DNA of 64,000 nt from Macrostomum hystrix (Eukaryota > Animalia > Platyhelminthes): the NCBI GenBank assembly GCA_950097015.1, contig CATNEN010000001.1, positions 23,126,001 through 23,190,000 of the forward strand. Direction: 5' to 3'. Positions 8,340-60,413 of the stretch are shown in pieces (position 1 is the first letter of the stretch; every line of letters starts with the position of its first letter). A program made the translations under genes and the position numbers. The notes below the pieces were generated by a model. The model worked only from the letters and a program-made list of their open reading frames with translations. It made no database searches and had not been told where the DNA came from.

Positions 8340-8407
8340 GTGAGTACGAATGCAAAACTAAACAGACATTGCTTTTTACTCAGAACGCGATTTTCTGATT
8401 TTCACAG

Positions 8408-8517
8408 AGATGGGTCGACCAATACTTGATCTGGCAACCGGAGGACTACAATGGCACTAGATCGCTTCACATACCGTCAAGTGTCATTTGGACACCCGAC
8501 ATCATCATATCCAACAG
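8408..8517 (+). CDS. nAChR alpha-type exon 3 (110 bp)
   Basis: ttcacag|RWVDQYLIWQPEDYNGTRSLHIPSSVIWTPDIIISN|gtttg. A 110-bp exon of this kind is typical of nAChR genes. Confidence 0.9.
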
Positions 8518-37129: not shown

Positions 37130-37857
37130 GGCCTTATATTTGCTTAGCTCTTTGTCCAAGCGTCTTGGCGAACGCTGAACCTCGACAGAAAAATACTTTC
37201 GACACAAACCAATGCTGTCAGACAGCACAGTCAGTGGCAGCATCTCGGTCTGCAGCATTCTTGAAAGAATTCATGAGGGCTTCTGTGACTTCTCTATCAG
37301 TTGCTGCTGGAAAAGCTGTGCGTGCTGCTAGGCGAATAGCATCTTCTAGAGGGCCAATAAAGCTCATATTTTCACTTCCATGCCTACTGAACTGTTACTG
37401 CAGCTCATTTATCATGACAGTTGACATTGCCATTTTGATGAAATTGCGAAGTGAAGACCCTCCAACAAGGGCCAACTTGTTGACAACACTGGAATTAAAT
37501 CCATTGTCCGCTTTCATCTGGTCAATGAACTCGTCCAGTTCTGGAGCAGTTTTCTTAGGAGAAAGAACCAACTGCTGGTTGGAAGATACTGGTCCATGTG
37601 CATTTCCATTTAAGTTTTAACTTGCCTTTCAATTTCCACTATTCTCTTATAAGTGAGTGCTGACAAATAGTAGGCTGCCTCTGCTGTAAAAGGCTGAAAG
37701 CCTTTCCGCTCAACGAGGCTATGAATTGGCTGCAACTCGACATGGCTGATGGGCTGCAATGATGGACTATGAGAATGTGGTCTAGGTGTCCACGGATGAA
37801 TAGTTGCAGCTGAGGCTGAGCCAGATGCTGACAAAATTGTTTGAGTTGGAAGTTCTG
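37130..37857 (-). pseudogene. DUF4806-like accessory ORF remnant (CACTA remnant 3)
   Basis: The minus strand reads PELDEFIDQMK...KLALVGGSSLRNFIKMAMSTVM...EVTEALMNSFKNAADR, with a stop and a frameshift. Confidence 0.7.
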
Positions 37858-40800
37858 CGACACAGGATCTATCGAATCCATCATCTTTGCTCGTCCCTCT
37901 CGCCGCAGCAATGGGATCAGGTCCTCAAACACTGGGATACCTAACCCCTGCTGACCGGTCGCTAGGTGAATCCAGGCACTAGGCGAACCTGACGGCAGAT
38001 GCAGGACTTTCCGAATCCAAGTTCTAATCGTACGTGATATTCCTTTTAGCTCGCAACGCTTAACGGCAGAGAGCCGAAGCTGGTAGATCAGTCGACTGAC
38101 TATGACTTCCTTGAGAGCTCTCAGTTTCTGGTGCGGCTTTAAGGCGGCTTTGCCGAGAGAGAGCAGCCAAACCTTAAGCTTTTTAGCACTCCAATTCCCC
38201 TTTCCTCTTGGCGAAATTTCCACGCCTAGGTACTTGACAAATTGGCCGACCTCCATCGATGGGAAAGAGTCTTCTCCCCAGAGGGGCCGCAGATCACTGG
38301 CAACCTTTAGCGTTCTGCACCCTTTGGCTGGCAACAGCCGCAGGGTTTTGCATTTCGCTAAGTTAACGCGCAGAGTTAACGAGACGAGAAAGGCCTTTGC
38401 CTTCCTCAGGATCTTCTCGTGCTCATAATCCGACCCTGCCAGAATAACCAGATCATCGGCGAAGGCCAGGACGCCAATCTTTCGGTCGGCTAACGCGTAT
38501 CCAAGCTCAGATCTTTCTATGTCCTCGATCAGTTCGTTCATTACTAGGTTGAAGAGCAGAGGGCTAAGAGGACAGCCTTGCTTAACACCGTTCTTGACCC
38601 TGATCGGACGTGTGCGCTCACTGCCCACTTCGATTGTGGTAGTGACTCGATCATACAAATCGGAGACTAGCCTCACATCCCACTCGCTAAAGCCGTGAAG
38701 TCTCATTGCTCTTACAAGCGCGACGTGTGGCACGGTGTCGAATGCCTTGCGCAGGTCGAGGAAAGTGGCATTCAGCTGTCTCCTTCGCCTGTGCGCATCC
38801 TTCACCACTCCGACGACAATTGAGACATTCTCGAAACACCCGTCAACAGGCCGGAATGCTTTTTGCCTCTCAGACATCTCAACACCGCTCCACCTGCGGA
38901 CAAGCAGTTTGGTATATAGACGTAAGAGTAGCGACCCGCTAGTAATGGGCCTCCAATTGTCGACGCACGTAGGCTCACCGCCTTTGTGTATTAGGACCGT
39001 GCGATTTTCTCTAATTTGATCAGGAATAGTCTCTGTCAGTCTCCAGACGTTCCAAATTGCGGCTAAGCACAACGGATTCATTTGCTCGATGCTGGAGCCG
39101 TTGAGAACCCCGTCCGGACCCGCCGCGGTGTCCCCGGCCCCTTTCAGGAGGCCTGCAACTTCCGCAGCTTCGAAAGGCCCTTCACTCTTCCGGAAAACCT
39201 TCCGAGCTTCAGGTCTTTGCCAGTCCTCAGTGTTTCCACTGACTTCCGGCACAGTTTCCAGTCGTGATTCATACACGGCCTCGACAGCTGTAGTGCTAGG
39301 CAGCGTCTTTGCCCCCGAGGGCTCGGATGCCTCTCCAGGGTCACCATCGATAATATTCTTGACAGTGCCTCCGAAGTCTCTCCTCAAGGCAGACTGAGTT
39401 TTAGCGTACCGCGCCCGCTTCCGATCATTGCTATTCCTGGGAGCCCCGATCCGGCTTGCGGCACCGCGTTTTTTAGGCGCGGTCCGTTTCGCCCTAGCAT
39501 CATTGGTACTCCACTCGTGGTAGAGCACCTCGCTCAGCTCTTCCCAGGGGTCACTACGGTCATCACGAGTGTTCAGAATCGCAGTAACGTAATTTTTCGT
39601 GGCTTCGACAACTTTGCTTTCGCCGTGTCCATCATCAATCGTGGTACAGAAACTTTCCAGCCAGGTTCGAATTTCCGCCTTTGCGGTTGCTTCCTGATCC
39701 CCAACAGGACCAGTAGCATCAACTCGTTCCGGCTCCGAGGGTTCTGGTGGTTGCCCACCAGATCCTGCAGGTAGGTCCAGCCTCCCACGACTATTGGGCC
39801 CCCTGGCATTCTCTCTGGGATCTTGCACCGACGCCTCATCACCGGGAGGAGTCAGGCTTGCTCCAACGGCCTCTGGCAGTGCACCACCTTGGGGCTGCTC
39901 GGGGCTCTCCGACAATGGCAGGCTGGCCGCTTTCGATTCAGCGGGCGTCGGTGGTTTTCCTCTGCCGGAGCGACTTCCTTTTTGCCCTTTCGGGCTTGGG
40001 GTTGCCTTCCGGTCCCTCTTCAGCTGACAGATCACGTTTTTGTACCGGTCCTGCTTGCGCAAGCTCGCGATACTACTGACGGTTCGCGCCTGGAATAAGC
40101 TGTGGAGATACTGGTTGATCTGCCTCACACACTCTACCGGCGCCGCGAGTTCACATTTCGCGATGTCAATTAGCTCCTCATCCTCGATCTTGAACACTTT
40201 TCTCTCGCAGACCTTGGTTGTGCTCGCGTGGATGGCTACGCATCACGTGGAGCCCAAGGCCTGTCTTAGTCGCAAAGCCACGCTCACAGTGGTCGCACTT
40301 GTGGTTCGAGTGCGTAGTCTCACTGTTGTCTGCTCTTGTTTGAATCGTTGTGCGCGGGTTAGTCGTCTTGTTGTCCTCTCGGACGGTATTGTCATCAGCC
40401 TCCCCCGTCGTGCCTTGCTGCTTCGGCTGGCACTTGCCCCAATGTGTAACCAGGGCTCTCAAGGTTGGCCTCTCAAAGTCTTGACACTTTGCGCATTGGA
40501 TCAGCAGCTCCGTACCACTGTGCATGGACTCTGCGTGGTACTTTGCTGCCTTCTCACTGGCGCATTCGGTGTTTAATTGACAAAGTCTGCAGTTGATGCG
40601 TGCAGGCCCTAGATAGAGGAAGGGCACAGGTTCGCTGTCGGTGTTCTTCCTTGCGGAAGGCCGGTCTGGGCAGTGCCTCGCAGTCGATTCCTGCGTGACT
40701 TGCCTGAGCTCTCCTTTCGGAGAATTAGTGGCTGATTTTGCCTGACCGGTGGCGCCGTTGTCCTTCTGGTTAGAACCGAGTGGACCGGCTGGTGCTGGAG

Positions 40801-40899
40801 CTCCCGTTAGCCGCGATGCCTCTTGGATGCTAGACATTTTCGCGTTACCGCTGGTCACGTGGAGAATTTCCGGACGTGGGAGTCAGTCTTTAAACCAGC
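37858..40899 (-). mobile_element. R2-clade non-LTR retrotransposon B (three zinc fingers, Myb-like, RT); 3'-truncated with no RLE endonuclease
   Basis: Zinc fingers CRLC..H..H, CAKC..HWGKC and CDHC..HVMRSH. RT motifs AGPDG, NWRPIT, QKAF, DLRKAFD, GVKQGCPLSP and FADD. One frameshift near 40190. Homology stops after SIDPVS at about 37858. Confidence 0.93.
40800..40899 (-). ncRNA. Putative HDV-like self-cleaving ribozyme at the 5' end of element B
   Basis: On the minus strand: P1 GCTGGTT/GACCAGC, P2 CTCCC/GGGAG, GG after P1, a P4 stem (gcg..atgtct/aggcat..cgc) and J4/2 GCTAA. The P3/L3 assignment is ambiguous. Confidence 0.55.
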
Positions 40900-43800
40900 A
40901 AAAGATACCTGCATATTTTTAACTAGGCTCATATCGTTTCGAGACGAGACTAATCCTTGCCTAGCGTTTCCACTAGTGGAGGCCAAAAAAAGTAGGCCAA
41001 AAAAATAAAGGGCGACAGTCGGACCCATCGGGCATTAACTGCGGAATTGCCGCCAAACCGCGGCAGAGCCTCTCAGCGCTGAAATCTGTAACGCTTTTCC
41101 CACTGTGCTGGCATTGAGGCCAAGCATCTCGAGTTTCCTCAGGGTATGACCGCAGACCGTTCCAAGGGATCCGATCGCGATACCTATGACTTTGACATCG
41201 CCGCTCACTCCGAGCGCATTGGCGACGGGGCCTTTAATACCTGCATATTTGGCCTCTTTCTCCCTTTCACGAGTTGGAATAACATTTGAATTCGATTCGT
41301 AGGGAATAGTCACCTCTACGATCGCTGCTTCGGTACCTCGCCTGCATAGCAGGTCTGGTTTGAACCGTTCAAGATCTTTGACCACCGTTCGTTCACGCCA
41401 CACTTCCCATCCGTTCTCAACCATGACCTTGCCCAAGTAATCCGCAATAAAATTGTGTCGGCGGCACTGGGCTAGTCTGGTGAAAGCACACTCGTTTAGT
41501 ACATGCAGGTCAGTCTCGACTGCTTTACTGCAGCGACGACACTTAAGCACTTCAAAGTCAGTCACTCCTGGGTGGAGGAATTGACGGGTTTCAATGGTTC
41601 TCGTGACCAATTTATTGATAGAGACGTATTCACCTCCTTTCACAACGCCTCTCCCGTCATGCAGCCAATTCGGTTTTACTAGTCCTTCCCATCGTGCATT
41701 CATCAGCTTGCCCCTTTGTGTTTCCAGGTAGGCTCGCTGATATCTGTCCTGAATGGTTAGTTTAGCTGACTTGATGTCTAGTCCGCGAGTGAGACCGCTT
41801 TCAAATGTTGTAATTGTTTTGCTTAGATCAGATACAACTGGATCCGTGGAGCCGACCATCTCGTCGCACGCTTTCCTGCGCATCAGTGGGACGGTTAGCT
41901 CAAAGTCGGGCAGCCCGAGGCCCCACACTGCCTGTGACATGTGGGCCCACGCATTGGGTGCACCAGCCTGCATGTGTAGGATCTCTTTGCAAGCTTTACG
42001 GATCATTCTAGTAATATTTCTCAACTCGCAGACTCTGGTCTCGCTTAGTCTCAACTCATAGGTAAGCTTTCCGACTATGACTTCTTTAATCCCTCGAATT
42101 TTCTGGTCAGGCTTCAGGGATGCACTCTTTATCCTTTTCAGCCATTGCTTCAGTCGGTCCTTTGACCAGATGATCTTGCCAGTAACAGAGACGTCCACAC
42201 CAAGATAGCGTATGAAGCCATCAACCGTCTCAACCATGGGCAGTTTTTCGCCCTTCCACATGATCGGATCACGACTGACCTTTAGGGTGTGCCTACCCTT
42301 AACAGGAAGCAGTCTCATGGCCTTACACTTCCGAAGGTTGACCACAAGTTTCTGCCTAGCGAAAAATTCTTCCGTGATTTTCAACAATTTCTTAATTTCA
42401 TAGTCGGTTGCCCCCAACAGAATCAAATCATCTGCGTAGGCCAGAACTGGGACAATATTGCCTTCAACCGGTACACCTAATCCTGTTGACTGTAACTCTC
42501 TAACCAATTCATCCAAAATAAGATTGAACAAAAATGGGCTGAACGGGCACCCCTGCTTTACTCCGCGTCGGATTGGAATAGATCCGCTCATTTCCTGTCC
42601 TATGGATAATTTGGTCCAGACTTCCGTATAGAGGTCTCTCACAACTCGAATCTCTTTCGGGCTGAACCCGAACCTTCTCATTGCATTATAAATGGCGTTA
42701 TGTTGGATGTTGTCAAACGCTTTGGCCAGATCAATAGATATAGCATTGATCTGCCGACGCTTTTTGTGGGCACCACGGAGGGCCCCCATCAATATGTTGA
42801 CATTCTCCCAACAGCCATCAACCGGACGGAACGCCTTTTGTCTCGGACTTATTGGCGCACCAGACCAGCGAGCTGTGATCAGTTTAGTGTACAGTCTAAA
42901 GAATAGGCTACCAATCGTAAGAGGCCGCCAGTTATTAACATCATTTAAGTCGCCGCCCTTTGCCAACAGGATCGTACGATTCTCTCTTAGAGCGGCTGGT
43001 ATTTTTTCCGTGTGCCACCAAAGGTTAAAGATCTGGGCAACGGATTCACAATCCAGGTTCTTGAGGCAATGCCCCGTGAACCACCTGTCTGTTCCCGCAG
43101 CTGTGGAGTTATTACTTTCCTTAATAGCACGTGTCACCTCCTGTTCATCGAAGGGTTCTTGCTTTCGTTCAAAGCAGAGTTCTCCTCTTGCAGGGGTGTC
43201 CGTGTCTTCAGGAATCCCGCCTGATGCATTACCCAGGCGATCTTGATACACTTTTTCGAGCTTGGCCATCTCGGGGCGAGTCTCCTCTTCAGAGATCTCT
43301 ACCCCATCAATAATTTTTGAGATGGTTCCAGAAAAATCCCTCGTTAACGCTTCTTGCGTTATCGCATACTTGCATCGCCTGCGGTAGGCTCTGCCAGTAC
43401 GTTTAAGTCTAGAATAATTTTGACTTTTAGGTTTGCCACGCGGCCGCCCCTTTGATTGGGGCTTCTGATCTGCCTTAGTAGGCCTCCCGGTGGACCAGGC
43501 AACCTTCAGTTGGGGCTCCAACTCGTTCCAACAATCATTTCCAGCCAGCCCCGCCTTCAGGTACTTAGCCACCTCCTTCTTCAACGAGTCGTTACCGAGC
43601 TCGTGCTTTTCCACAAATAAGTTAATTGCTGCTAGGATGTCCCCATCATCAGCCGCTCTTCGAGATCTGTCGTTTGCCACTCGATCTTCATCGTCCGCAG
43701 ACTCTTCAGAGTTCGCACTAACCTCTTCTACCTCCTAAGTATCAGTATCACTACCAGGCTGTTCTGGACCTCTACTAATTTCCTCAAGGACCAAACGATA

Positions 43801-44730
43801 CCGAGGTTGTTTCCGAAGGTTGGCAATGCTCTGAACGGTACGATGCGGAAATAAATTCTGAAGTTTAATGTTGACCTTGCTTAGATTACCCAAGGCCAAC
43901 TCCGCGCGGGCAATGTCTCGCATCTCTGCCTCTTCCACCTTAAAGATCCTTTTGGTTGGTAGGGCATCATTATGTTCCTGTTTGTGCGATTTCTGCACGT
44001 GCAGGCCGAGACCTGTCACCGTTGTAAATGCGCGGTTTCAAAATTTGCACTCATGTTGGGCAGCATCGCCAGGATCAGCCATAGCGCCAGCAATAGGGTC
44101 CTCAGCTGGGCCTTGGCACTTACCCCAGTGACACACCACACCACGAAGGGTCGGACGTTCAAATACCTTGCATTTCCCACACATGATAGTAACATTTTCA
44201 CTCTGATGGTTGTCTCGAACATGATTTCTACCATGATTCAGTTTTCACTGTAGTGTTACATTGCGTACAAATTAGCACCTGAGGACCGCAGTACCACAGG
44301 ATAGCAAACCGATCACCGTCCGCAACCGTTGAGGCGCCGGTTACGGTTCCCCGGCACCGCCGGGACCCGCCAGGCGGGATTGTAACATGTTTGTACGGTG
44401 CGGTATGCTGGAACAGACGCCGGGGTGCAAGCCCGACGCCCTTTGGTTGCCAGAGCCTCGTTAGTAAACTCCATGCGCGCCGGTCCGCGGTTCAGAGAGC
44501 TGCAGGGGGGACCACGAGCAGGTGAGGTTGGACTTTCCAGCAAGCATGGTTGCCACGCCTTTTAGCGTCACCGGAACAGGCACTGACTGTCTTTTTGTGA
44601 AAATTTTGCAAGATTTTGGCCTGTTAGTCTCTGGATCTAAGTAGCCGGGCTTAACCCAACTAAGTGATTCGGTTCCCATCTTACACTTAAGCCGGACTCG
44701 CGATGCCAAGGGGATCGCCCCATAGGCTTC
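40900..44730 (-). mobile_element. Full-length R2-clade non-LTR retrotransposon A inserted in 18S rDNA (R8-like); N-terminus disrupted, RT-RLE ORF 41035-43680 intact
   Basis: Three zinc fingers (CTQC..HVRDNH, CGKC..HWGKC and CKF*..HVQKSH). RT with YADD, a CCHC motif (CRRC...HVLNEC), RHN, and a PD-(D/E)xK RLE (KPDL..EVTIPYE..KEAKY). The 5' end abuts 18S ...GTTGCAAAGCTG. Confidence 0.95.
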
Positions 44731-44754
44731 CAGCTTTGCAACCATACTTCCCCC
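44455..44754 (-). ncRNA. Putative HDV-like ribozyme of element A (core 44455-44529; P1 5' strand probably the 18S GGGGG at 44750-44754)
   Basis: The minus strand reads cctc-ACC-TGCTCGT-GGT-CCCCCCT-GC...ACTAA-c-gagg, i.e. P2, P3, L3, P3, P1, P1.1, P4, J4/2, P2 in order. Confidence 0.75.
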
Positions 44755-44843
44755 GGAACCTAAAGACTTTGGTTTCCCGGAGGCTGCCCGAGAGGTCAAT
44801 AAGCAAACGATCTCGGATCGCCAGTTGGCATCGTTAATGGTCA
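44731..44843 (-). rRNA. 18S rRNA internal fragment (central region)
   Basis: The minus strand reads TGACCATTAACGATGCCAACTGGCGATCCG...CGGGCAGCCTCCGGGAAACCAAAGTCTTTAGGTTCCGGGGGAAGTATGGTTGCAAAGCTG, a conserved eukaryotic SSU sequence. Confidence 0.95.
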
Positions 44844-44860
44844 ATCTCGCTTAATCTAGC

Positions 44861-46629
44861 TTAATTTGCTAAAAGTACAAGTTCCACTTTTTAAGTCTAA
44901 GAAAAGTCCTTAGGCTTACAAAAGTCTAAGGATTACAACTTCAGACTTACAGCGTCCCCTGACGTATACGCCATACTTTTGCCTGTCGATCCGGCAGCAT
45001 TAACAATTCTCAAGCAGGGACAGAGACTTCGTACACAATCCTTGGCCTTGGCTGAAACAAAACACGCCGATCCTGGTGCAGGACATGTAACCATTGTCAC
45101 AATTGGCTTATCCATTATCCTATCCAAGGGTAATGGACCTACCCTTAGTATGTCTAGGATTTGAGCCATTTTCGCTGAAAGTTAGTTGAATTGGTAAATT
45201 GCTGAAACTTTTGCATATAAATACAAACAATATTTTAAGTATACAAATAAGTTATCAAGCATATCAATCAATTTTGATTGACTCATACGGAAATGGCTGG
45301 AATAGGGATTGACGTTTCACTGGTCATTATCACTAATGTGCATTTGTGGAGTACAGGCAGTTCCCGAGCCAATATATTTGAAAGGCAAATTGTAGATCTA
45401 TTTTTTGCTACCACCCTTGCATTTTAGAGCTATGGGCCATGAACAATTAAAATCCCCATATGGCCAATGTTATCTGTGACCAGATTGGCATCAGAAAGGA
45501 GATGACAAAATAATGTGAACTGCAGGATTTGAAAACTGCCTCCAAAGGATTTTGGACCTCTTAATTAGACTATTCCAAACTTACTACACCACACTACACA
45601 ACACAATGTAAACTATGTACTTTAACTTTTAATTGCCAAAAGTCAAAGTTCCATTTTCCAAATCTTCAGCTTTAACAATGAAAATACCTTTGAAAATCAC
45701 AATATTATTTTAGCTAGGCAATATTAAAAAACTTAAAATTGATTTTCTCTGCTACATTTAAAATTTAGGCATAGTTTCCACCTTTAAGGCACTTGCCCAG
45801 TGGTTTTTGAGGCAGGTAGAATATGACATAGAGCATAGAGCATGAAATATGTCAATTCATTTAGCTAGGCAATATTAAAAAACTTAAAATTGATTTTCTC
45901 TGCTACATTTAAAATTTGGGCATACTTTCCACTTTCAAGGCACTTGCCCATTGGTTTTTAAGGTAAGTAGAATATAACATAGAGCATAGAGCATGAAATA
46001 TGTCAATTCATTTAGCTAGGCAATATTTTAAAAACTTAAAATTGATTTTCTCTGCTACATTTAAAATTTGGGCATAGTTTCCACCTTTAAGGCACTTGTC
46101 CAGTGGTTTTTGAGGCAAGTAGAATATAACATAGAGCATAGAGCATGAAATATGTCAATTCATTTAGCTAGGCAATATTTAAAAAACTTAAAATTGATTT
46201 TCTCTGCTACATTTAAAATTTGGGCATAGTTTCCACCTTTAAGGCACTTGCCCAGTGGTTTTTGAGGCAAGTAGAATATAACATAAAGCATAGAGCATGA
46301 TATATGTCCAATTCATGTTGTTGCATTGTGCTGCATTCATTTATTCAATCATTCATGTGCTGCAAGTTCATTCTGTGCTGCCTTTTTTACTTTGTTGTAC
46401 AAGTCTGTAGGAAATCGGAAAGAGTGCTCGATGCAGCGTGTTCTTAAGTAAGCTATGCACCATAGTCCGGATGGTGTAATGTGGTACGCCAGTGGTACGC
46501 AAAAAGAAAGACGTGGGGGTCCCTCAGTGTAACGTTGCGGCACTAAAAATCTGTGATTGATCGACTGATGCCTCCTTATGATCCTCACCTACGAAATAAG
46601 CCCCGAAAGCCGAGCATTTCGACTTTGAA
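44861..46629 (-). repeat. Tandem gene unit, copy 1 (truncated at the 18S fragment)
   Basis: Near-identical to 47611-49021 plus 58051-58109. Contains four ~152-bp subrepeats at 45710-46310. Confidence 0.92.
44951..45169 (-). CDS. Tandem-unit gene, first coding exon, copy 1 (73 codons, intact), unknown Cys-containing domain
   Basis: A tttcag acceptor before the ATG and a gtaagt donor. The differences from copy 2 are enriched for synonymous changes. Confidence 0.7.
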
Positions 46630-49021
46630 AACGGTAAAAAATATGGCGGACAAACTTTAATAAATATTTTAATTGTTACAAATAGTAACAAATACACAGG
46701 CTGGGCTCCCTCCTGGTCCATAGACTGGCTAGATTTATGGTATAAAAAAAAAAAAATAAAAAAAAAAATAAATGCGTATTGTCGCAAAAGGAAAAGGCGC
46801 CAGATAATACAAATAAATATATAAATAGTTTAGCGACGTCGCTTCCTTCGGCCAGCCTTCTTAGGGGCAGCCTTTTTTACACATTGCCTCTTGGCCCTCT
46901 GCTGCTCTTCTTCTTCTTCCTCCTCGTCCTCCGCTACCGCCGACGGGCCGGGACCGGCCCCGCCAAACTGGTCCGGTGGTATGGCGGCGGGAACGGCGGG
47001 ATCGACCGGATCGGCGTCGGCGGGATCGGCGTCGGCGGGATCGGCGTCGGCGGGATCGGCGTCGGCGGGATCGGCGTCGGCGGGATCGGCGTTGGCGGGA
47101 TGAGGAGGGGCCTCCGCGAGGTCAACTGATGCAGCACCAATTGCCAGCGCCGTTACCTCGGCAGTGGTCTTTGCCAGACAAAGGAGCCGTTTAGCGTCAC
47201 GCCTTTCGAGACACATTATCACAGCCCGTAGCATTTCTGCTACCGGCTGTGATAATGGCGGAAGGAGTCCGCCGAAGTGTTCTCCGGCTGCAAGTGTGAA
47301 GTGCTGGAGTGCTTGATTCAGTGCCCCAGACGCCCTTGCAGCAGGCGTTGGGGCATTGGCTTGCACGGCAGGAGCGGCAGGGGCGGCTGGGGCGGCAGGC
47401 CTGCCCAAGGCTCTGAGCAGTTGTTTACAACTACCTACTCCGTGCCGATAAAGGCAGTATCCCTGATCAGGAAAGTACTGCAGTATCTGAAGGAGAAAGG
47501 CAAGTCAAAGTTAAGGCTTTAACTTAACCAAGTTCAAGTTCAAGTACAAGTTCCAATTTATTTGCCAAAAGTCCAAGTTCCACTTTATTTGCCAAAAGTC
47601 CATGTTCCACTTAATTTGCTAAAAGTACAAGTTCCACTTTTTAAGTCTAAGAAAAGTCCTTAGGCTTACAAAAGTCTAAGGATTACAACTTCAGACTTAC
47701 AGCGTCCCCTGACGTATATGACATAGATTTACCTTTTCATCCGGCAGCGTTAACGATTCTCAAGCATGGACACAGATGTCTTACGCAATCTTTGCCCTTT
47801 GATGTAATAAAGCATGCCGATCCTGGTGCAGGACAATGAACCATAGGCACAATCGGCTTTTCCATTATTCTGTCGAAGGGTAATGGCCCTACCCTTAGAA
47901 TTTCTAGTATTTGAGCCATTTTCGCTGAAAGTTAGTTGAATTGGTAAATTGCTGAAACTTTTGCATATAAATACAAACAATATTTTAAGTATACAAATAA
48001 GTTATCAAGCATATCAATCAATTTTGATTGACTCATACGGAAATGGCTGGAATAGGGATTGACGTTTCACTGGTCATTATCACTAATGTGCATTTGTGGA
48101 GTACAGGCAGTTCCCGAGCCAATATATTTGAAAGGCAAATTGTAGATCTATTATTTGCTACCACCCTTGCATTTTAGAGCTATGGGCCATGAACAATTAA
48201 AATCCCCATATGGCCAATGTTATCTGTGACCAGATTGGCATCAGAAAGGAGATGACAAAATAATGTGAACTGCAGGATTTGAAAACTGCCTCCAAAGGAT
48301 TTTGGACCTCTTAATTAGACTATTCCAAACTTACTACACCACACTACACAACACAATGTAAACTATGTACTTTAACTTTTAATTGCCAAAAGTCAAAGTT
48401 CCATTTTCCAAATCTTCAGCTTTAACAATGAAAATACCTTTGAAAATCACAATATTATTTTAGCTAGGCAATATTAAAAAACTTAAAATTGATTTTCTCT
48501 GCTACATTTAAAATTTGGGCATAGTTTCCACCTTTAAGGCACTTGCCCAGTGGTTTTTGAGGCAAGTAGAATATAACATAGAGCATAGAGCATGAAATAT
48601 GTCAATTCATTTAGCTAGGCAATATTTAAAAAACTTAAAATTGATTTTCTCTGCTACATTTAAAATTTGGGCATAGTTTCCACCTATAAGGCACTTGCCC
48701 AGTGGTTTTTGAGGCAAGTAGAATATAACATAAAGCATAGAGCATGATATATGTCCAATTCATTTTGTTGCATTGTGCTGCATTCATTTATTCAATCATT
48801 CATGTGCTGCAAGTTCATTCTGTGCTGCCTTTTTTACTTTGTTGTACAAGTCTGTAGGAAATCGGAAAGAGTGCTCGATGCAGCGTGTTCTTAAGTAAGC
48901 TATGCACCATAGTCCGGATGGTGTAATGTGGTACGCCAGTGGTACGCAAAAAGAAAGACGTGGGGGTCCCTCAGTGTAACGTTGCGGCACTAAAAATCTG
49001 TGATTGATCGACTGATGCCTC
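46630..49021 (-). repeat. Tandem gene unit, copy 2 (~2.45 kb; continues at 58051-58109 beyond the Gypsy insertion)
   Basis: Direct match to copy 1, with two ~152-bp subrepeats at 48461-48760. Confidence 0.92.
46830..47919 (-). pseudogene. Tandem-unit gene copy 2: exons 47701-47919 and 46830-47486; ~290-aa Ala/Pro-rich protein with (DPADA)n, an acidic run and a basic NLS-like C-terminus
   Basis: Canonical GT/AG sites. There is an in-frame TGA in the first exon and an apparent frameshift near 47450. The protein ends KKAAPKKAGRRKRRR*. Confidence 0.6.
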
Positions 49022-49984: not shown

Positions 49985-50926
49985 TCACCTGGGAGCCATA
50001 CGTGCCAATGCCTCCGGCAGCCACCACTCTTCAACAAGCTCCACGACCACCTGGCCGTACCTGGCTCTGATCTGGTATGGCGCTGGAGCTAGGCCGCCCA
50101 CCATTATCTCGGCCCGCGCCGCAGCTTCCTGGGCCATTTCACGTCGGGTGGCCCGATCTTCTGCGGCGAACGCCTGGTGTACTTCTATAGGCCAGCCTTC
50201 TTCCCTCTCCATCCGGGCAGCGCGTGCTAGCGACTCGGCCACCTGCGCAATGGCCATTTCACGTGCTGGCGCTCTGTGGCCCCATTGGGCTCGGCGCTGC
50301 CGGCGTCGCTGGGCACCGCCTCTGCGTCTTCTGGGCCTCGCAGCAGCCCCTTCCAACTCCTCGACGCTGTCGTCCGAGGATGACCTCGACGGTGCAGGAG
50401 GATGGAACACAGGTGGTGCTGCTGGTCCTTCCGGCACGTCTTCATGCTCGCTCTCCTCATCATCTAGCATGCCTTCATCCTCCGATGAGGGCATCCCAAA
50501 TTGCAGTTGGGCCCACAGATCCTCATTAATATCCACCTGCACGTCCAACGACCCGCTGCTGCTAGAACTCAGCCGTGGACGCGCCGCCTGACAGGCTGCG
50601 TCCTGAGCCTCGGCGATCGCCATGCTGGCCTGATCCCTCTTGGCCCTAGGGACCGATTGGGGGGCCTCTGACGCAATTCGCTTCCTCTGTGAACATCGAG
50701 GGAGGGCGGGCATAAGATGCTGATGCCAGTTCGGTGAGCGCTGACCCAAGGGAAAGGGCGCGCTGTTCCCAAACTGACACCTTAAAAGTGCTAGTCGTTT
50801 ACTCACTGTCTCCTGACGCTCCTTCAGGGGGCTCTTGGATGCTTCCTGCACCCGACGTGTGGGAGCCGGCAACTTTGGCCTCGTGACCACTCTTCCTTCC
50901 GGTCCGAGATTTTCATTATTCTCCAT
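49985..50926 (-). CDS. Gypsy ORF3 (313 aa) in the env position, unknown function
   Basis: ATG-initiated uninterrupted ORF between pol and the 3' LTR. No evident signal peptide or TM segment. Confidence 0.65.
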   Translation of the reverse strand: MENNENLGPEGRVVTRPKLPAPTRRVQEASKSPLKERQETVSKRLALLRCQFGNSAPFPLGQRSPNWHQHLMPALPRCSQRKRIASEAPQSVPRAKRDQASMAIAEAQDAACQAARPRLSSSSSGSLDVQVDINEDLWAQLQFGMPSSEDEGMLDDEESEHEDVPEGPAAPPVFHPPAPSRSSSDDSVEELEGAAARPRRRRGGAQRRRQRRAQWGHRAPAREMAIAQVAESLARAARMEREEGWPIEVHQAFAAEDRATRREMAQEAAARAEIMVGGLAPAPYQIRARYGQVVVELVEEWWLPEALARMAPR

Positions 50927-51000
50927 TCCTTTTCCTTTATTTTATTTTATTTTTCTTGTTCTCCAAGGGATCTTCCTCGGCCTGATTCGGAGGATAGGAA

Positions 51001-54000
51001 TCACTGAAACATTTTAGGTATGCGGCGCATCATTCTGATGAAATAGGATTTTCTCCTAGGATCGACCTGCAGCCTTTCCGGCTCTCGCCTAACTCTTTGC
51101 GGCCTTTGCTGCGGCTCCTGATCCCTAGCGTCACCTATCTGAGCAGCCTCACCTACTTCTCTGGCCCTAGCACCTTCTGCAATCTCCCCGTGCATAGAGG
51201 ATGGGATGGGGGGCAGGGTTGGAGAGGGCAACGGACTGTCCGACGGCAGGACAACCACATCACCGCACGCTTCCCCCGCCTCTTCTCCGTTGCAGATCTC
51301 CGTGCCGGCCGGGTCGTGGAGATTCGACCTGGAGACAGCTCGTGGTCGCAGGTGCCACCTTCGAGCGCTCCACAGGCCGATCTCGTCGTCGTCGTCGTCG
51401 TCGTCATCGCTGTCGGTAGGCTCACCGGCCGCGTCAGCTGCTGGAGTGCCACCCTTGGGTGGCCTTCCGAGCTTCCACCGTGCCGGGCTCGCCTCCTCTG
51501 TCCTGTCGCACATTGAGGCCGGTACCGGGAGCAGGTTGCGCCGGTGGACTACCAGCACCTGCTTCCTGGCCTTCCTGGTGTTGCCGTGTCGCCTGATCTT
51601 GTATACCGTCTCGCCCTTGCACTCGAGCACCACGTAGACCGATTGTCTAGGCCGATGGAACTTGCTGATTTCTCCGGATTCGATCACCGGGTTGTTAAGT
51701 AAGACCAGCTGGCCCGGGCGGAGTGGTCTCGCCTGCGGTCTCTCTTGGTAGTGCTCCTCTCGCAGCACCTGATACCTCTCGAGCTTGTCCCGGGCACAAT
51801 TGACCGCCTGGTCTATGCGCTCCTGGAAATGTCGGAGATAATCCGGCAGGTCTGCGTACTCAGCCAGTGCTGTCAACGTGTTGTCGACGGGCAGCCGGTA
51901 CTCCCGTCCGAAGACCAGGAAGTACGGCGTGTACCCGGTCACAGGGTGGACACTGGTGCGCAACGCGATTAAGCACGCGGGCAGCATCAGGTCCCAATCC
52001 CTATGCTCTTTCTCCAACAAACACGTGAGCACTGACTTGATCTGGCGATTCAGATTTTCGACCTGGCCATTGCTAGCCGGGTTATAGGGACACGTGTGCG
52101 TATGACGGATGCCATACAGCTTACAAAAGTCCTCAAACTCTGCACTCATAAAGTTCGTCCCCTGGTCCGTGTGCAACCAGGCTGGTGCACCGTACTCGGG
52201 AATGAACCTATCCAGCAGCAGTTTGATCACGGTTTTAGTCTTCTGGTTTCGCATCGGATAGGCAAACGGGTACTTCGATGTTGCATCACACAGGGTGAGG
52301 ATGTACCGATGTCCTCGGGCACTTGGTTGAGACAAAGGCCCGATTACGTCGGCGTGCACCCTTCCCAAAACCTCACACACTGGAAAGCTCTGCGGTGGGA
52401 CTATCTCCTTCCGCCTTGACTTGCTCTCCAGGCATGTCCTGCAACGTGCCACGTACCCCGTCGCCTCCGACCAGAGACCGGGTCTCCAGAACCTGTCTCT
52501 CACTCTCTGCACCGTCTTGGACTGGCCGAGATGACCCGCCAGGGGTGAGTCATGCAAGGCCTCAAAGACACGCGAGTCTAACGCTTTCGGTAGCACTGGT
52601 CGCGGCGGCCGGTTGTCATCAAAGTCTATGACGAGCAACCCGTCGCGCACCTCCAGCTCCTCAAATGCACCCAGGAGGTCTCTGACCTCTTTCGGCATCT
52701 GGAGTCGCTGATCGAACCTGGGCTTGTCCTTTCCTGACAGCTTCAGTTCCGTCAGGTATCGGATTGCCGGATCTTGGTGCTGAGCTTCTAGCAACTCGAC
52801 CTGGCTAACCGGCACCTTCAGGAACTCTGTCACCACTGCTCTTACCGGAGGCAGCTCTCCATTGTCCTTGTCCTCCTTGTCCTTGGACCCAGGAGCCCTG
52901 GCAGCAGGGGGTGTCCTTGACAGGCGAGACTGGTCGCAACGAGTCTGACAACTCCCCTCCACCTCTGCTCCCTGTCCCACGGAGAGACCAACAGTCGGCA
53001 GGCAGGACTGGCTGCAACGAGCTAACTGCTGATCCTCCTGACCCGAGGACCTTGACACAGCGGGATCAGTCGCTCGCAGGCAGGACTGGCTGCAACGAGC
53101 CAGCGACTTCTCCCCTGTTTCCGAGAACTCCTCAACAGCAGGATTCGGTGTCTGCAGGCAGGACTGGCTGCAACGAGCGGACACTTCCTCCTCTGTCTCC
53201 GGACACACCAGAGGTTCCGGATCTGGCGCCTGCAGGCAGGGCTGGCTGCAACGAGCGGGCACCTTCTCCTTCACCTCTGAGCCTTCCGCCACCACCTGAG
53301 TTTGCACCTGTGCCTTGGCATCACAGCCCCGCACCCAGTGCTCCTCCCTTGTGGCTCCCTGGCTCCAGCTACTCTCCGTAGCTACCGTCTGCACGGCGGC
53401 GTCCACAGTCTGCAGGCAGAACTGGCTGCAACGAGCTGACTGCGGGGCCCCGTTGACAGGTGCTTCCCGCCTCACTGGCTGGCCTGCGGTCGTGTCTTCC
53501 TGACACCCTTGCAGCACCGCCTTATCTTGGCGCACCTCGACAGGCTCCAGGACCGGCTCTTCCACCAGTCCTTCAGACACAGCTGCTTCCCATCCTGGTC
53601 GGCCGTCAACGACATCTTGAGCCTTGGGTTTCACAGCCCGCAGTGGTTCTGCGGCTCCTGTGATTTCACCCTGTTCATTGCCCCTTTCCTGTCCCTCCTC
53701 CAGCTGACTCGAAAATTGGCGGGTGCAAGCACTCACACCGAACTGGTTGTGGGGTGTCACCACCCCAAAAGAACAATTGACCGGGTTATCCGGCTTTCTC
53801 GACATCGAGTCAGCATTTTGGTGAGACTTTCCAGGACGATGAACGATGGTGAAATCAAACTCACTCATTCTCTCAACCCAACGGCCTAAGATGCCTGTCG
53901 CCTCGGTCTGATGCATGAGCCACAGCAGGGCCTTGTGATCGGACCGGACAACAAACTTCTTGCCAACCAGGAAGTACCGGAAATGCCGCATCGCATCTGC

Positions 54001-56235
54001 GACTGCCAGCAATTCTTTGCGGGTCGTAGTGTAGCGGGTCTCCGGCCCTCGCAGCTTCCGGCTGTAGTAGCCAACAGGCCTTTCTACTCCATCGGACTGC
54101 AGCTGATTCAAACAAGCCCCTATGCGGTCATCAGAGGCATCTGTGTCCAGGACGAAAGTCACCTTCGGGTCAGAGGTGTACTCCGGGTACGCCAGTACCT
54201 CCGTTGAGCACAACGCATCCTTCAATCCCTGAAAGGCTCTCTCATGCTCTGTCTTCCACAGACCCTTCAAGCTGGTAACGTCCCGCTTAGTGAGCTCGTG
54301 CAATGGTGCTGCAATCCCTGAGTAATTGCGGACGAACTTCTTGTAGTACTGTGCCAACCCCAAGAAGCTGCGCAATTCTTTGGCGCTTCGAGGTGTCGGC
54401 CAGCCTCTGAGCTCGGCGATCTTATCCTCGTTCGTCAGGATGCCTTCTGGTGTCACCACATGGCCTAAGTAGTGCAGCTCCCTCTTGAACAGGTGGCACT
54501 TCTTCGGCTTCAGCTTGAACTGGGCTTCACGGATTCGAGTCAGCATCATCCTCAGATGCTCCAAATGGTCGTCAAAGGTAGGCGAGTGGACGAGTATATC
54601 ATCGATATACCCCAACGCCACCTTTGGCGTCAGCCCCTCCAGCAGCTTGTTGATGCAGCGCTGAAAAGACCCTGCCGAATCCGTCATGCCCATCGGCAAC
54701 ACAGTAAACTCAAACTGACCTCTGTGGTGAACCGAGAACGCGGTCAGGTGTCTATCCTGCTCTCTCAGCGGGATCTGCCAGAAACCTTGTGCAAGATCGA
54801 GGGCGGAATAGTATTGCGCCCCTCTCAAATGCTCAAAGGTATGCTGTATGTCTGGCAGCGGATAGACGTGCTTCAGGCAGCGGCTATTCAACTCGCGATA
54901 GTCTAGGACAATCCTGATAGTCTTGTCTTTCTTAGGGACAATCAGGAGAGGCGTGTTGTAGCTGGAGAATGTCGGCTTGATGATGCCTTTCGCCAACATC
55001 TCATCCAGCATCTTGTCCAACTGTTCCATCAAGTGAGGCGGGATCCTCCTCGGTGGAATGCGAACTGGAGTGGGATCTGTCACAATGATCTCATGAGTGA
55101 CTAAGTCAGTGACACCATGGTCCAGGGGATGCATTGCGAATGCCTCGCGGCACTCTCTTAACATCTCCTTAACCCGATGCCTCTGCTCCTCGGTCAACCT
55201 CTCACAAATCTCCACCTCCTCTAGCCATGCCTCATCGCTCTCCAGCCCTTCTGCCTGAACCTGCCTGACCGGCGTCTCCTCTAGCTCTGGTAGATATTCG
55301 AGTTCGTCGGCCTTCAGTGGCCTCGCTAGCCCTACAAGACCATTGCGTCGAATGACCGCCGGGAAGCAAGAGGTATTGATGACTTCAACACACCCTGTTC
55401 CGTCAGCCATCGTCAGCAATGTCGGGGCCATCTCGACCTGAGACGCCCCTGGCTTCAGTCCTGACCTCAAGGACTCAACAAGCAGCGGCGTGCCGTGACA
55501 GTCAGTCCGGCCACCCGCTAGCTTCACCGCTACGAGCATCGAAGAGCGCGCTGGCACAGTGGTCTGCTCGAGTGAGTAAACCCGACTGGCCCTCGCCTCT
55601 CGCCTCGTGAACCTCAGCGGCACTCTGGTTCCTGACTTCATGGTCAGCATCCCCTTCGGAAAGTCAATCTTCTGGGTGTGCTGGCGCATGAAATCAATTC
55701 CTAGGATGTTCTCGTGCTCGCCCTTCGTCACGCAGAACTCGACGTCTACAGCGTAGTCGCCGAGCCTGACCTCAAAGGCGACTCGCCCTAAAACCGGCAA
55801 TCGAGAACCATCAAAGTTGCACAGGGCACTCTCTCCCGTCAGCACAGCGTGCGGCACTACATGCCGCAGAGATGCCCACGTCTCACTTCCAATCAGACAG
55901 CGCCTGCTCCCTGAGTCTAGGAGAAAAGGCACCGTCTTCTTGGAAACCATCGCCGTCACATAGGGGTCAGCGTTGGAGGCATACCAACGCTCGAGGAAGC
56001 TGGTGCTAGGAGAGCCCCTACCCTCTCCTCCAGCTGACTCCTCAGTCTCCCTCAGGCCCGTCCAGGAACTGGACTGCGAGGGGCACTGCCGTCCGTGCTC
56101 CTCGCCGTCTCGTTTCCCGACGTCTGAGTGCCTTGGGCCTGCAGCTCGGACTGCTGCCTGGGCTCTTGCCGTTGCTCTCTCGGGTACCCCCGAGTGTGGT
56201 GCTCGTAACGCGGCTTGGGTGGCCTCGTCGGGCAA
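51001..56235 (-). CDS. pol: Gypsy Pol (PR-RT-RH-insert-IN), expressed by -1 frameshift
   Basis: PR motif LLDSGS, RT motif YIDD, RH motif DTDAS, IN HHCC (H..LAGH...CRTC) and DDE core. Confidence 0.97.
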   Translation of the reverse strand: MPDEATQAALRAPHSGVPERATARAQAAVRAAGPRHSDVGKRDGEEHGRQCPSQSSSWTGLRETEESAGGEGRGSPSTSFLERWYASNADPYVTAMVSKKTVPFLLDSGSRRCLIGSETWASLRHVVPHAVLTGESALCNFDGSRLPVLGRVAFEVRLGDYAVDVEFCVTKGEHENILGIDFMRQHTQKIDFPKGMLTMKSGTRVPLRFTRREARASRVYSLEQTTVPARSSMLVAVKLAGGRTDCHGTPLLVESLRSGLKPGASQVEMAPTLLTMADGTGCVEVINTSCFPAVIRRNGLVGLARPLKADELEYLPELEETPVRQVQAEGLESDEAWLEEVEICERLTEEQRHRVKEMLRECREAFAMHPLDHGVTDLVTHEIIVTDPTPVRIPPRRIPPHLMEQLDKMLDEMLAKGIIKPTFSSYNTPLLIVPKKDKTIRIVLDYRELNSRCLKHVYPLPDIQHTFEHLRGAQYYSALDLAQGFWQIPLREQDRHLTAFSVHHRGQFEFTVLPMGMTDSAGSFQRCINKLLEGLTPKVALGYIDDILVHSPTFDDHLEHLRMMLTRIREAQFKLKPKKCHLFKRELHYLGHVVTPEGILTNEDKIAELRGWPTPRSAKELRSFLGLAQYYKKFVRNYSGIAAPLHELTKRDVTSLKGLWKTEHERAFQGLKDALCSTEVLAYPEYTSDPKVTFVLDTDASDDRIGACLNQLQSDGVERPVGYYSRKLRGPETRYTTTRKELLAVADAMRHFRYFLVGKKFVVRSDHKALLWLMHQTEATGILGRWVERMSEFDFTIVHRPGKSHQNADSMSRKPDNPVNCSFGVVTPHNQFGVSACTRQFSSQLEEGQERGNEQGEITGAAEPLRAVKPKAQDVVDGRPGWEAAVSEGLVEEPVLEPVEVRQDKAVLQGCQEDTTAGQPVRREAPVNGAPQSARCSQFCLQTVDAAVQTVATESSWSQGATREEHWVRGCDAKAQVQTQVVAEGSEVKEKVPARCSQPCLQAPDPEPLVCPETEEEVSARCSQSCLQTPNPAVEEFSETGEKSLARCSQSCLRATDPAVSRSSGQEDQQLARCSQSCLPTVGLSVGQGAEVEGSCQTRCDQSRLSRTPPAARAPGSKDKEDKDNGELPPVRAVVTEFLKVPVSQVELLEAQHQDPAIRYLTELKLSGKDKPRFDQRLQMPKEVRDLLGAFEELEVRDGLLVIDFDDNRPPRPVLPKALDSRVFEALHDSPLAGHLGQSKTVQRVRDRFWRPGLWSEATGYVARCRTCLESKSRRKEIVPPQSFPVCEVLGRVHADVIGPLSQPSARGHRYILTLCDATSKYPFAYPMRNQKTKTVIKLLLDRFIPEYGAPAWLHTDQGTNFMSAEFEDFCKLYGIRHTHTCPYNPASNGQVENLNRQIKSVLTCLLEKEHRDWDLMLPACLIALRTSVHPVTGYTPYFLVFGREYRLPVDNTLTALAEYADLPDYLRHFQERIDQAVNCARDKLERYQVLREEHYQERPQARPLRPGQLVLLNNPVIESGEISKFHRPRQSVYVVLECKGETVYKIRRHGNTRKARKQVLVVHRRNLLPVPASMCDRTEEASPARWKLGRPPKGGTPAADAAGEPTDSDDDDDDDDEIGLWSARRWHLRPRAVSRSNLHDPAGTEICNGEEAGEACGDVVVLPSDSPLPSPTLPPIPSSMHGEIAEGARAREVGEAAQIGDARDQEPQQRPQRVRREPERLQVDPRRKSYFIRMMRRIPKMFQ

Positions 56236-57341
56236 TCACGCCTCAGGTGTCCGAACTTCCCGCAACCAAAGCATGCCCCTCTTGGCGGCGCCGGTCCTTC
56301 CTGCTGCACGGCTCCTTGTGGTCGGCTGAGCGCCTGGACCAGCATCTCCTGCATCTTCTGCTGATGCTGCAGCTGCTGACCCTGGACCTCGACCATCTTG
56401 GTCATCAGCGATTCGAGTCCCTTCAGCGCAGCGGTAACACCTTGCGGTGGCGGCCGCGCATTCAGGTCCCCATCCTCGCCGTGTACCATCCGAGCCGGCC
56501 CATCCTTCGCCCTCTGGACTGCCTCGTCGACCACCTCTAGGCGCTTTAGCTCTCGCCTAGCTTCCAGGAGTGTCCTAGGGCGAGTCCGCAGCAGGTGCTT
56601 GCGGTTCTCAACCGAAGTCCGAACTCCCTTAATAAACTGGTCGACCAACTCATAGTCCAAATCTCTTTGGCGAAGGTTGGTATAGGCCTGCTCGCCGAGT
56701 CCCTGCAACGCATCAGCATAGTCATCAAGCGTTTCCGCTTTCTTCTGATAGCGATTGCGGAACTCGTCTCGGTACTCCTCAGGGCTACTCAGCGGCGCGA
56801 ATCGCTCCACAATACGCTCCTTGAACTGGGCATACGTGAGCTCTTCGGGCAGCTTCATCCTGAGGACGGCATTCAGGCACTGTACATCGAGGTGGTCGAG
56901 TAGAAGGGCCTTGCGTGTCTCCGAACTGCGAATCGCAGCCCGGGCGCAATACGCTTCAAACGCGTCCACCCACAGATGCACGTCCTGACCCCGAGAAAAC
57001 TTGGCAATCTTCGCCGTCCTACCTTGTTGTTGTTCCACCTGCTTCTCCATCAGGTTGAGCATCCGGTACACCAGGTCAGCCGTCGCCCTGTCGTCCAGCC
57101 TCGGTCGTCGTCGCCTTGCTGCCGCTGCCGCTGCGCCCCGGTCGTCGTCCTCGCCGCCAGACTGGTCGTCGTCGCCGAAGTCGCTCTCGCCGTCCTCGCC
57201 GTCGCCGACACAGCCGTTGCCGCGGCCGTTCCACCGACTCCTGCCAGCAGCTTCATGCAGCGCACAGCCACCGCGAGACTCCAAGCTCCGGGCTACCTGC
57301 TGCCTATCTTCTCTCTCTGAATCTAATTCCTCTTGGGACAT
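56052..57341 (-). CDS. gag: Gypsy Gag
   Basis: 429-aa ORF with a capsid-like core and a CCHC knuckle, CFGCGKFGHLRRDC. Confidence 0.95.
   Translation of the reverse strand: MSQEELDSEREDRQQVARSLESRGGCALHEAAGRSRWNGRGNGCVGDGEDGESDFGDDDQSGGEDDDRGAAAAAARRRRPRLDDRATADLVYRMLNLMEKQVEQQQGRTAKIAKFSRGQDVHLWVDAFEAYCARAAIRSSETRKALLLDHLDVQCLNAVLRMKLPEELTYAQFKERIVERFAPLSSPEEYRDEFRNRYQKKAETLDDYADALQGLGEQAYTNLRQRDLDYELVDQFIKGVRTSVENRKHLLRTRPRTLLEARRELKRLEVVDEAVQRAKDGPARMVHGEDGDLNARPPPQGVTAALKGLESLMTKMVEVQGQQLQHQQKMQEMLVQALSRPQGAVQQEGPAPPRGACFGCGKFGHLRRDCPTRPPKPRYEHHTRGYPREQRQEPRQQSELQAQGTQTSGNETARSTDGSAPRSPVPGRA
56060..56118 (-). promoter_or_regulatory. -1 programmed ribosomal frameshift signal (G_GGA_AAC plus downstream pseudoknot)
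   Basis: An X_XXY_YYZ heptamer in the gag frame within the gag/pol overlap. Downstream pairings are gcgagg/cctcgc, gcac/gtgc and ggac/gtcc. Confidence 0.8.
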
Positions 57342-59667: not shown

Positions 59668-60413
59668 CCGCAGTACGAATGCCCCCGTCTGTCTCTCTTA
59701 ATCATTACCTCGGGTTCCGAAAACCAACAAAATGACTCGTAGAACCGAAGTCATATTCCATTATTCCATGCTGAAGTATTCCGGCTAATGGCCTGCTTTG
59801 AGCACTCTAATTTTTTCAAAGTAAACTTGCTGGGCACTCAGGGCATTCCATTAAGAACACCAAGAGCGAGCACCGACTAGGTAGGCCGAATCAGATCCAA
59901 CTACGAGCTTTTTTACTGCAGCAACATTAATATACGCTATTGGAGCTGGAATTACCGCGGCTGCTGGCACCAGACTTGCCTTCCAATAGATACTTGTTAA
60001 CGGATTTAAAGTGTACTCATTCCAATTACGGAGCCTCAAAAGAGTCCCGTATCGTTATTTTTCGTCACTACCTCCCCGTGCCGGGAGTGGGTAATTTGCG
60101 CGCCTGCTGCATTCCTTAGATATGGTAGCCGTTTCTCAGGCTCCCTCTCCGGAATCGAACCCTGATTCCCCGTTACCCGCTATAACCATGGTAGGCATAT
60201 CACCTACCATCGTAAGTTGATAGGGCAGACACTTAAAAGATACGTCGCCAGCGCAAAGGCCATGCGATAAGCACAAAAGTTATCCAGAGTCACTAAACAG
60301 ACGGAGCAAGCCCCGATTGGATTTGATCTAATAAATGCGCCCCTCCCTGATTTAATGAGCCATGTCTTAATCTTTGAGACAAGCATATGACTACTGGCAG
60401 GATCAACCAGATA
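59668..60413 (-). pseudogene. 18S rRNA 5' portion, pseudogene with internal deletions
   Basis: The minus strand starts TATCTGGTTGATCCTGCCAGTAG, contains GTGCCAGCAGCCGCGGTAATTCCAGCTC and ends GGGGGCATTCGTACTGCGG. Several conserved segments are missing. Confidence 0.96.

Follow-up and report, generated by a model that had tools for sequence, protein, structure and literature searches.

The 64,000-nucleotide (nt) stretch of the Macrostomum hystrix genome analysed here (the window, on contig C1) carries on its minus strand a non-LTR (LTR, long terminal repeat) retrotransposon of 3,812 nt, element A, which directly abuts a fragment of the 18S ribosomal RNA (rRNA) gene. Element A is very probably a dead copy of an R2-A retrotransposon specific for 18S ribosomal DNA (rDNA), of the kind described from Hydra as R8, in a Macrostomum-type flatworm. 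Its junctions with the 18S gene fall at nt 1145/1146 on the 5' side and at nt 1147/1148 on the 3' side, and they were found at four loci, in two element families, and in a metagenome contig from another source (L038). In three further, diverged copies on contig C1 the join falls at this same 18S nucleotide, and two of these copies lie in longer rDNA relics. The specificity for the 18S gene is real, and the lineage, probably of R8 type, is more widespread than described, being present in a flatworm and in a second animal represented by L038. Because L038 is flanked by 18S sequence, the 18S clade is supported at 100/98 and motifs are shared with Hydra R8A, the sequence comparisons favour a range extension of the R8-type lineage over an independent switch of target.

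Junctions with the 18S gene

Positions in the 18S gene are given relative to the rDNA unit of the same genome (contig C17), in which this gene measures 1813 nt. The fragment upstream of element A corresponds to nt 1030-1145, with 115 of 116 nt identical to the 18S of the arrays (99.1%, blastn), and a scan of the window with Rfam returned a short minus-strand small-subunit (SSU) rRNA match at ~44.7-44.9 kb as well as a larger 5' part of the 18S gene at 59.6-60.4 kb. A previous sequence-only reading had described the 18S gene as joined directly to the element's 5' end; the direct join stands, while the fragment extends 3 nt further than was proposed, to a length of 116 nt. All 17 array copies of the 18S gene that were examined read ...GCAAAGCTGGAACTTAAAGG (that is, ...GGTTGCAAAGCTGGAACTTAAAGGAATTGACGG) across the junction region, and since the own-genome sequence at this point is GCTGGAACTTAAAGG, the 5' junction is placed at GCTGGAA|GCC, or in longer form GCTGGAA|GCCTATGGGG. 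The continuation anticipated in that reading, with AAACTT, is the usual eukaryotic sequence and differs from the 18S of the source animal itself: arrays C15, C17, and C42 have GCTGGAAC, the Rfam eukaryotic consensus has GCUGAAAC, and the A-to-G difference, 3 nt upstream of the insertion point, occurs in array and inserted copies alike. The target can be written as GGAA(C)|(T)TAAAGG, with one or two bases lost on insertion, and is located in the 'AAACTTAAAGGAATTGACGG' stretch that is universally conserved in SSU rRNA.

The ends of element A were fixed by comparison with a copy at C1:16051422-16055222 (the C1:16.05 Mb copy; 94% identity over 3,812 nt) and with two copies that are only partial, one at C1:20.999 Mb (80%) and one at C1:14.218 Mb (68%). 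The junction GCTGGAA|GCC occurs in two copies in total, those of the window and C1:16.05 Mb, and junctions of the 3' end with the 18S gene (TAAAGGAATTGACGG) were observed in three other copies (97%, 80%, and 68% identity), in the form (A)n|T(T)AAAGGAATTG, i.e., (A)n|TTAAAGG or (A)n|TAAAGG. Spacer and 18S nt 1-1145 border the C1:16.05 Mb copy on one side, with 18S nt 1144-1587 bordering it on the opposite side, and the C1:14.218 Mb copy is followed by 18S nt 1148-1813 and further transcribed rDNA, 2.6 kb in total. Tabulating the junctions of the other genomic copies, as had been suggested beforehand, thus gave 18S 3' junctions in three and a 28S flank, the mark of the canonical R2 site, at no copy of either A or the second family, element B. 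The claim that the 18S rather than the 28S gene is targeted is borne out by these recurrent junctions in diverged copies, by the second family, and by the metagenome relative.

Comparison of the window copy of element A with the C1:16.05 Mb copy over 871 codons gave a synonymous divergence (dS) of 0.12 and a nonsynonymous divergence (dN) of 0.02. With dN/dS at 0.16, most of the divergence between the copies therefore arose under selection on the RT-RLE frame (Table 1), in replicating lineages, and the two are best read as having inserted independently at the identical nucleotide. The breaks in the N-terminal region differ between them. Every A-like or B-like copy is located on contig C1 between 14.2 and 23.3 Mb, amid LTR elements and rDNA fragments, and has the look of a remnant of rDNA units that departed from the arrays.

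A scan of JGI metagenome contigs for relatives yielded 63 loci. Those with rDNA flanks all lie at the 28S R2 site except the closest, L038 (contig Ga0256914_1018008; 34% identity), in which the first 97 nt represent 18S nt 1044-~1141 of a bilaterian type. Its 5' join is GGTTGCAAAGC|CGAGG, and the end of the contig, ...AATAAAAAAATA, is compatible with the same 3' junction. The L038 protein has the same three zinc fingers and Myb domain as the element A family, and a terminal AUGAG..UAGU..(A)n motif is common to element A, its diverged copies, and L038. Relatives on bacterial-bin contigs that have rDNA flanks all adjoin 28S sequence, and a scan of viral contigs found no relative. One bacterial-bin contig, JADYZG010000021.1, holds an R2 relative with its 3' flank (2913-3002) in another part of the 28S gene (unit positions 10480-10567), which may be another target variant.

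Coding content and relationship to R2-A elements and Hydra R8

The C-terminal part of the coding region is open in the window copy (881 codons, Table 1), and its domain make-up was observed directly. This frame matches Pfam RVT_1 (E 4.5e-33), and in a PDB search the R2 A-clade proteins 9nl3 and 9dou score best (E ~1e-82), while R2Bm (8gh6) aligns to residues 72-880. The CCHC motif (CRRC..H..C) and the KPD...(D/E)VT core of the endonuclease align to 9nl3, so that reverse transcriptase (RT), CCHC, and PD-(D/E)XK restriction-like endonuclease (RLE) are combined within one open reading frame (ORF), as in the R2 superclade. The N-terminal fingers and Myb-like motif of this superclade are also present by alignment to the M. 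lignano protein P0001 and to L038, though interrupted in the window copy. R2-A elements are characterised by three zinc fingers at the N-terminus, one of the CCHC and two of the CCHH type (PMC5035012); the fingers C..C...H....H, C..C...H...C, and C..C...H....H were found in P0001, in L038, and, broken, in element A. The sequence-only reading was thus right to assign the element to the R2 clade and to see three zinc fingers and a Myb-like region. It was also right about a full-length element with an open RT-RLE ORF, but a complete protein is not encoded. Relative to the intact 1156-amino-acid (aa) homologue of Macrostomum lignano, the window copy has a frameshift within finger 1 (~44234-44238), a TGA where finger 3 should have one of its cysteine codons (44040-44038), and a TAG that follows the Myb-like region (43737-43735), and tblastn with P0001 against element A accordingly runs through three reading frames with two in-frame stops. 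With its N-terminus broken by the frameshift and two stops, the window copy cannot encode the full protein; this is ordinary decay, in a relic outside the rDNA arrays. A PDB search with the 94-aa finger/Myb piece gave no significant match, and a protein atlas search gave generic RVT_1 clusters only.

The best protein match of element A is from M. lignano (71% identity), which has at least two intact 1156-aa copies, in agreement with the earlier supposition of a non-cnidarian host. In a maximum-likelihood tree of 36 proteins (963 columns, LG+G4; ten near-duplicate rows left out; R8 not among the proteins), the clade (L038,(P0007,(P0004,(P0005,(B,(A, M. lignano)))))) is supported at 100/98, and a quick tree of 46 rows agrees; the 18S clade consists of A, B, M. 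lignano, L038, and P0004-7. This clade holds every known 18S-flanked member and not a single 28S-flanked one; the 28S-flanked relatives are found in other clades, and an Adineta protein also falls outside.

R2-family elements seldom change their target, R8 and R9 being the textbook cases. Kojima is reported to have placed R8, in 2006, 37 bp upstream of R7, in a part of the 18S gene that is highly conserved. R1-clade elements have an N-terminal apurinic/apyrimidinic (AP)-type endonuclease and two ORFs, and R7 (R7Ag, Anopheles), which resembles element A in its 18S rDNA insertion, is described in the literature as an R1 element; element A, in contrast, lacks an AP-type endonuclease (RVT_1 being the only Pfam match) and has a C-terminal, restriction-like one. 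Canonical R2 elements (R2Bm and avian R2Tg; PDB 8gh6, 9dou, 9nl3) have the same protein architecture, full-length similarity, and presumably target-primed reverse transcription in common with element A, but are targeted to 28S TTAAGG|TAGCC. R9 of bdelloid rotifers, an R2-lineage element with a changed target within rDNA (PMC5035012), differs in using another 28S site. R8 (R8Hm-A/B, Hydra magnipapillata) is an R2-A element inserted in the Hydra 18S gene (PMC5035012, PMC4838377, PMC7650587, PMC3636483) and resembles element A in being of R2-A type, in its insertion into a highly conserved part of the 18S gene, and in many lineage-specific residues from YADD to the C-terminus. The differences lie in the host (cnidarian versus flatworm), in an identity of only ~38% over the compared stretch, and in the nature of the copies described here, which are relics outside the arrays.

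The supplementary alignment of PMC3774820 contains a 'HydraR8A' row, and by-eye comparison of this row with element A showed the common motifs KCRRC...ETD.H, VWRERT, PYE, and AIG..GT...TLRKL, and further LKP.QK...KEV, LR.SE...ELR, and R.LPVK. Both A and M. lignano have these patterns, B and P0004-P0006 have part of them, and R8A additionally shares IPS.TYD..KYLG with P0004 and P0006. Ten A/R8A motifs are missing from the 36 non-clade proteins or seldom seen there, with at most one per protein. From YADD onward, R8A and A are identical at 57 of 151 positions (~38%, hand count). Over the same stretch, identity to A is 35-43% for members of the 18S clade, 26% for P0007, and 21-34% for non-clade proteins, those with 28S flanks reaching 25-31% except for one shorter alignment at 33%. 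The shared motifs and these identities make an affinity of element A to R8 likely.

Alternative explanations and a proposed route of insertion

An independent switch from 28S to 18S within flatworm R2-A elements, unrelated to Hydra R8 and with a convergent 18S habit, is improbable, though it is the alternative to which we assign most weight. In its favour are the absence of R8 from the tree and an identity to R8A that, by hand count, is only ~38% in the compared stretch. However, the motifs that R8A has in common with A, P0004, and P0006 are seldom or never found among the 36 non-clade proteins, and the identity between R8A and A lies within the range of the 18S clade and above the non-clade proteins. 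Very unlikely, in our view, is an element without true 18S specificity whose 18S flanks were transduced or belong to a duplicated block: the window copy has 18S sequence on one side only, 116 nt of it and far from the arrays, and all copies are confined to 14.2-23.3 Mb of one contig, as such a block would be, but in two copies collinear rDNA extends for hundreds to thousands of bases on the sides where it belongs, the identical junction nucleotide recurs in families 45-68% diverged and in an unrelated metagenome contig, and a dN/dS of 0.16 speaks against one insertion having simply been duplicated. Least weight of all, next to none, is given to an assembly chimera of 18S reads and a dispersed retrotransposon. 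Both rDNA and repeats are prone to misassembly and the join is known from assembled sequence, but the same 5' junction occurs at two loci that differ in their surroundings, three loci have 3' junctions that match, and the independent assembly of L038 from another source has the same join.

Several points weigh against reading element A as a member of an R8-type, 18S-specific lineage. The window copy has no 3' 18S flank (the absence of the 18S continuation had been noticed earlier; the element ends at 40916 and is followed by 23 nt and then by element B) and lies outside any rDNA array. The 17 examined 18S genes of the arrays on C15, C17, and C42 are all free of an insertion at this site, and six-frame searches with the A and B proteins found no close relative on these three contigs, so that current activity in the genome is unsupported; the status of the arrays is taken from assembled rDNA contigs, and inserted units may exist outside the assembly. 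The likely affinity to R8 comes from comparison by eye with a published alignment rather than from a tree, and the assignment does not imply use of the same nucleotide as in Hydra R8.

For an R8-type element with 18S specificity, insertion may be envisaged by analogy with R2. A single protein would bind the 18S target via its three zinc fingers and Myb domain, and the C-terminal restriction-like endonuclease would nick the bottom strand between ~nt 1146 and 1148 (GGAAC|TTAAAGG), after which target-primed reverse transcription would begin at the nick, with the A-rich 3' end of the element's RNA as its starting point. The 5' end would be joined after 18S nt 1145-1146 with the loss of 1-2 target bases, with variable joining a few bases upstream. 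The element RNA is probably made within the pre-rRNA and would be released by a 5' ribozyme, the P1 helix of which uses upstream 18S bases. The window copy itself lies in a transposon-rich stretch of C1 with several rDNA relics and has lost its downstream flank to element B.

R2 RNAs are cut from the pre-rRNA by a hepatitis delta virus (HDV)-like ribozyme, often within the upstream rRNA (PMC3774820). In element A, a hairpin precedes GCAACCAUGCUU, which can form 12 consecutive pairs with the 18S gene, a number that 3 of 300 shuffles attain, and where the C1:16.05 Mb copy has a C-to-U change the pairing is preserved as G-U. By eye, L038 has an HDV-like core at ~270-330, ~190 nt into the element, comprising a P3 of CCA/UGG and an L3 of CCUCCUCGU, and continuing with UGCAACC, GG, a 6-bp CUGCAC-UCG-GUGCAG hairpin, and GCUGA. 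Here UGCAACC can pair with the complementary 18S GGUUGCA at -11 to -5; it stands at a distance similar to that of GCAACCAUGCUU in A. In element B, UCCGGAA is able to pair with 18S UUCCGGG at -32, and the stray 18S piece before the B copy at C1:20.999 Mb begins at -33. On the other side of the balance, Rfam returned no ribozyme family match on the window or on L038, and the minimum-free-energy fold of the 5' region of element A is unexceptional (z -1.2). Since no Rfam model matched, the 5' ribozyme is kept as a supported hypothesis, not a finding.

In the literature searched, 18S-specific elements of the R2 lineage are reported from Hydra only, and a full-text search with the site string and 'non-LTR' gave no match. 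R2 surveys of 2026 checked candidates for 28S flanks and make no mention of 18S, Hydra, or Macrostomum; the large survey among them relied on 28S flanks and would therefore have missed 18S elements. R8 could be an old R2-A lineage that spans several phyla, is specialised for a single, universal site in the 18S gene, and possesses a 5' ribozyme that cleaves itself and borrows its P1 strand from that gene, a proposal whose chances we put at about even. If it is true, the presence in Hydra, Macrostomum, and another bilaterian would mean persistence since before the split of cnidarians and bilaterians, or horizontal transfer between freshwater animals. The two co-resident 18S families, the intact M. 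lignano relatives, and L038 provide material on how three-finger R2 proteins are re-aimed, a question that bears on the current re-targeting of R2 for gene insertion. As the 18S site is conserved across eukaryotes, naturally intact members are candidates for a second rDNA-directed insertion enzyme. The interest as an integration tool that had been attached to the family on account of the open RT-RLE ORF hence lies with the intact relatives, the window copy being broken and useful as a family marker only.

Element B and other features of the window

Element B follows A tail-to-head (Table 1) and is ~45% identical to it at the aa level; it also has three zinc fingers. Its ORFs, with RVT_1, extend over 40858-40178 and 40197-37639, the alignment to P0001 ends at residue 897, the 5' untranslated region (UTR) is short (~55 nt), and unrelated repeats lie downstream of the truncated element. 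The sole other B copy (C1:21.000 Mb) is riddled with stops, and the B homologue at C1:20.999 Mb is joined to 18S as ...CCTGGAAC|CAAGACTG, which is the same site as that of A. Within C1:20992000-21001999, the interval 6712-9109 contains, in this order, an A-like 3' end, 18S nt 1148-1262, 18S nt 1114-1146, and the B-like element; the two 18S pieces thus stand in permuted order at the position that is held by the linker in the window. This arrangement is as expected if B complementary DNA with 33 nt of upstream 18S had been attached to a break that lay downstream of an A element inserted earlier. The linker in the window was considered as a clean 18S remnant and rejected, its matches being limited to TATG and GCTGG.

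Table 1. Coordinates of elements A and B and associated features in the window.
Feature	Position	Strand	Basis
18S rRNA gene fragment, upstream flank of the insertion	44843-44728	minus	blastn vs own rDNA unit; Rfam SSU_rRNA_eukarya
Element A, R8-like R2-A non-LTR retrotransposon (very probable assignment), full-length decayed copy, 3,812 nt	40916..44727	minus	ends from copy comparison
5' UTR of element A, ~235 nt	44493..44727	minus	M. lignano P0001 homology begins at element nt 242
GCAACCAUGCUU, candidate 3' strand of a putative ribozyme P1 helix	44542..44553	minus	complementary to 18S nt 1124-1135 (window 44738-44749)
N-terminal DNA-binding region: zinc fingers CCHH, CCHC, CCHH and Myb-like motif, broken	43681..44492	minus	tblastn with P0001
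Open 881-codon frame: RT (YADD), CCHC (CRRC...H...C), PD-(D/E)XK endonuclease (KPD...EVT...K)	43680-41035	minus	ORF list, Pfam, PDB
3' UTR of element A, end ...AUGAGCCUAGUU(A)n; terminates ...GAGCCTAGTTAAAAA at 40916	40916..41034	minus	end kept in 97%, 80%, and 68% copies
23-nt linker (TATGCAGGTATCTTTTGCTGGTT) between A tail and B head	40893..40915	minus	comparison with C1:20.999 Mb
Element B, second R8-like family, tail-to-head after A, endonuclease part missing	37840..40892	minus	ORFs, RVT_1, P0001 alignment

Instead of element A, the arrays hold two 28S R2 lineages, which are 25-28% identical to A and placed elsewhere in the tree. They occupy the canonical site at C17:70500-77500 and C17:88500-95500, with open frames of 995 and 1179 aa, and account for the longer array repeat spacings of 16.9 and 18.9 kb. 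A 28S R2 is also carried by the scrambled rDNA relic at C1:16047900-16059800, in the order spacer, 18S nt 1-1145, element A, 18S nt 1144-1587, 28S, R2, downstream 28S, and spacer; here the end at 18S nt 1587 is fused directly to the 28S gene 25 nt before the R2 site, and the R2 is 5'-truncated.

Directly upstream of the 18S fragment in the window lies a 41-nt repeat end (44860-44900), with further occurrences 2.75 kb off, at 47610-47650, and on contigs C9, C7, and C1. Probably it is where another transposon terminates, one that cut the 18S gene at nt 1030. An older rDNA relic on the minus strand (59668-61214) consists of 5' external transcribed spacer and 18S nt 1-905, 92-94% identical to the arrays. 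The 18S part of this relic (59668-60413) stops abruptly at nt 905, beside a Gypsy-type LTR retrotransposon. A common origin of this part and the 116-nt fragment as the two halves of a single gene was considered and rejected, because their divergence from the array differs (~92% versus 99%). The Gypsy-type element, on the minus strand at 49985-57341, has long open frames, namely a gag with a zinc knuckle (429 aa) and a protease-RT-RNaseH-integrase polyprotein frame (1744 aa).

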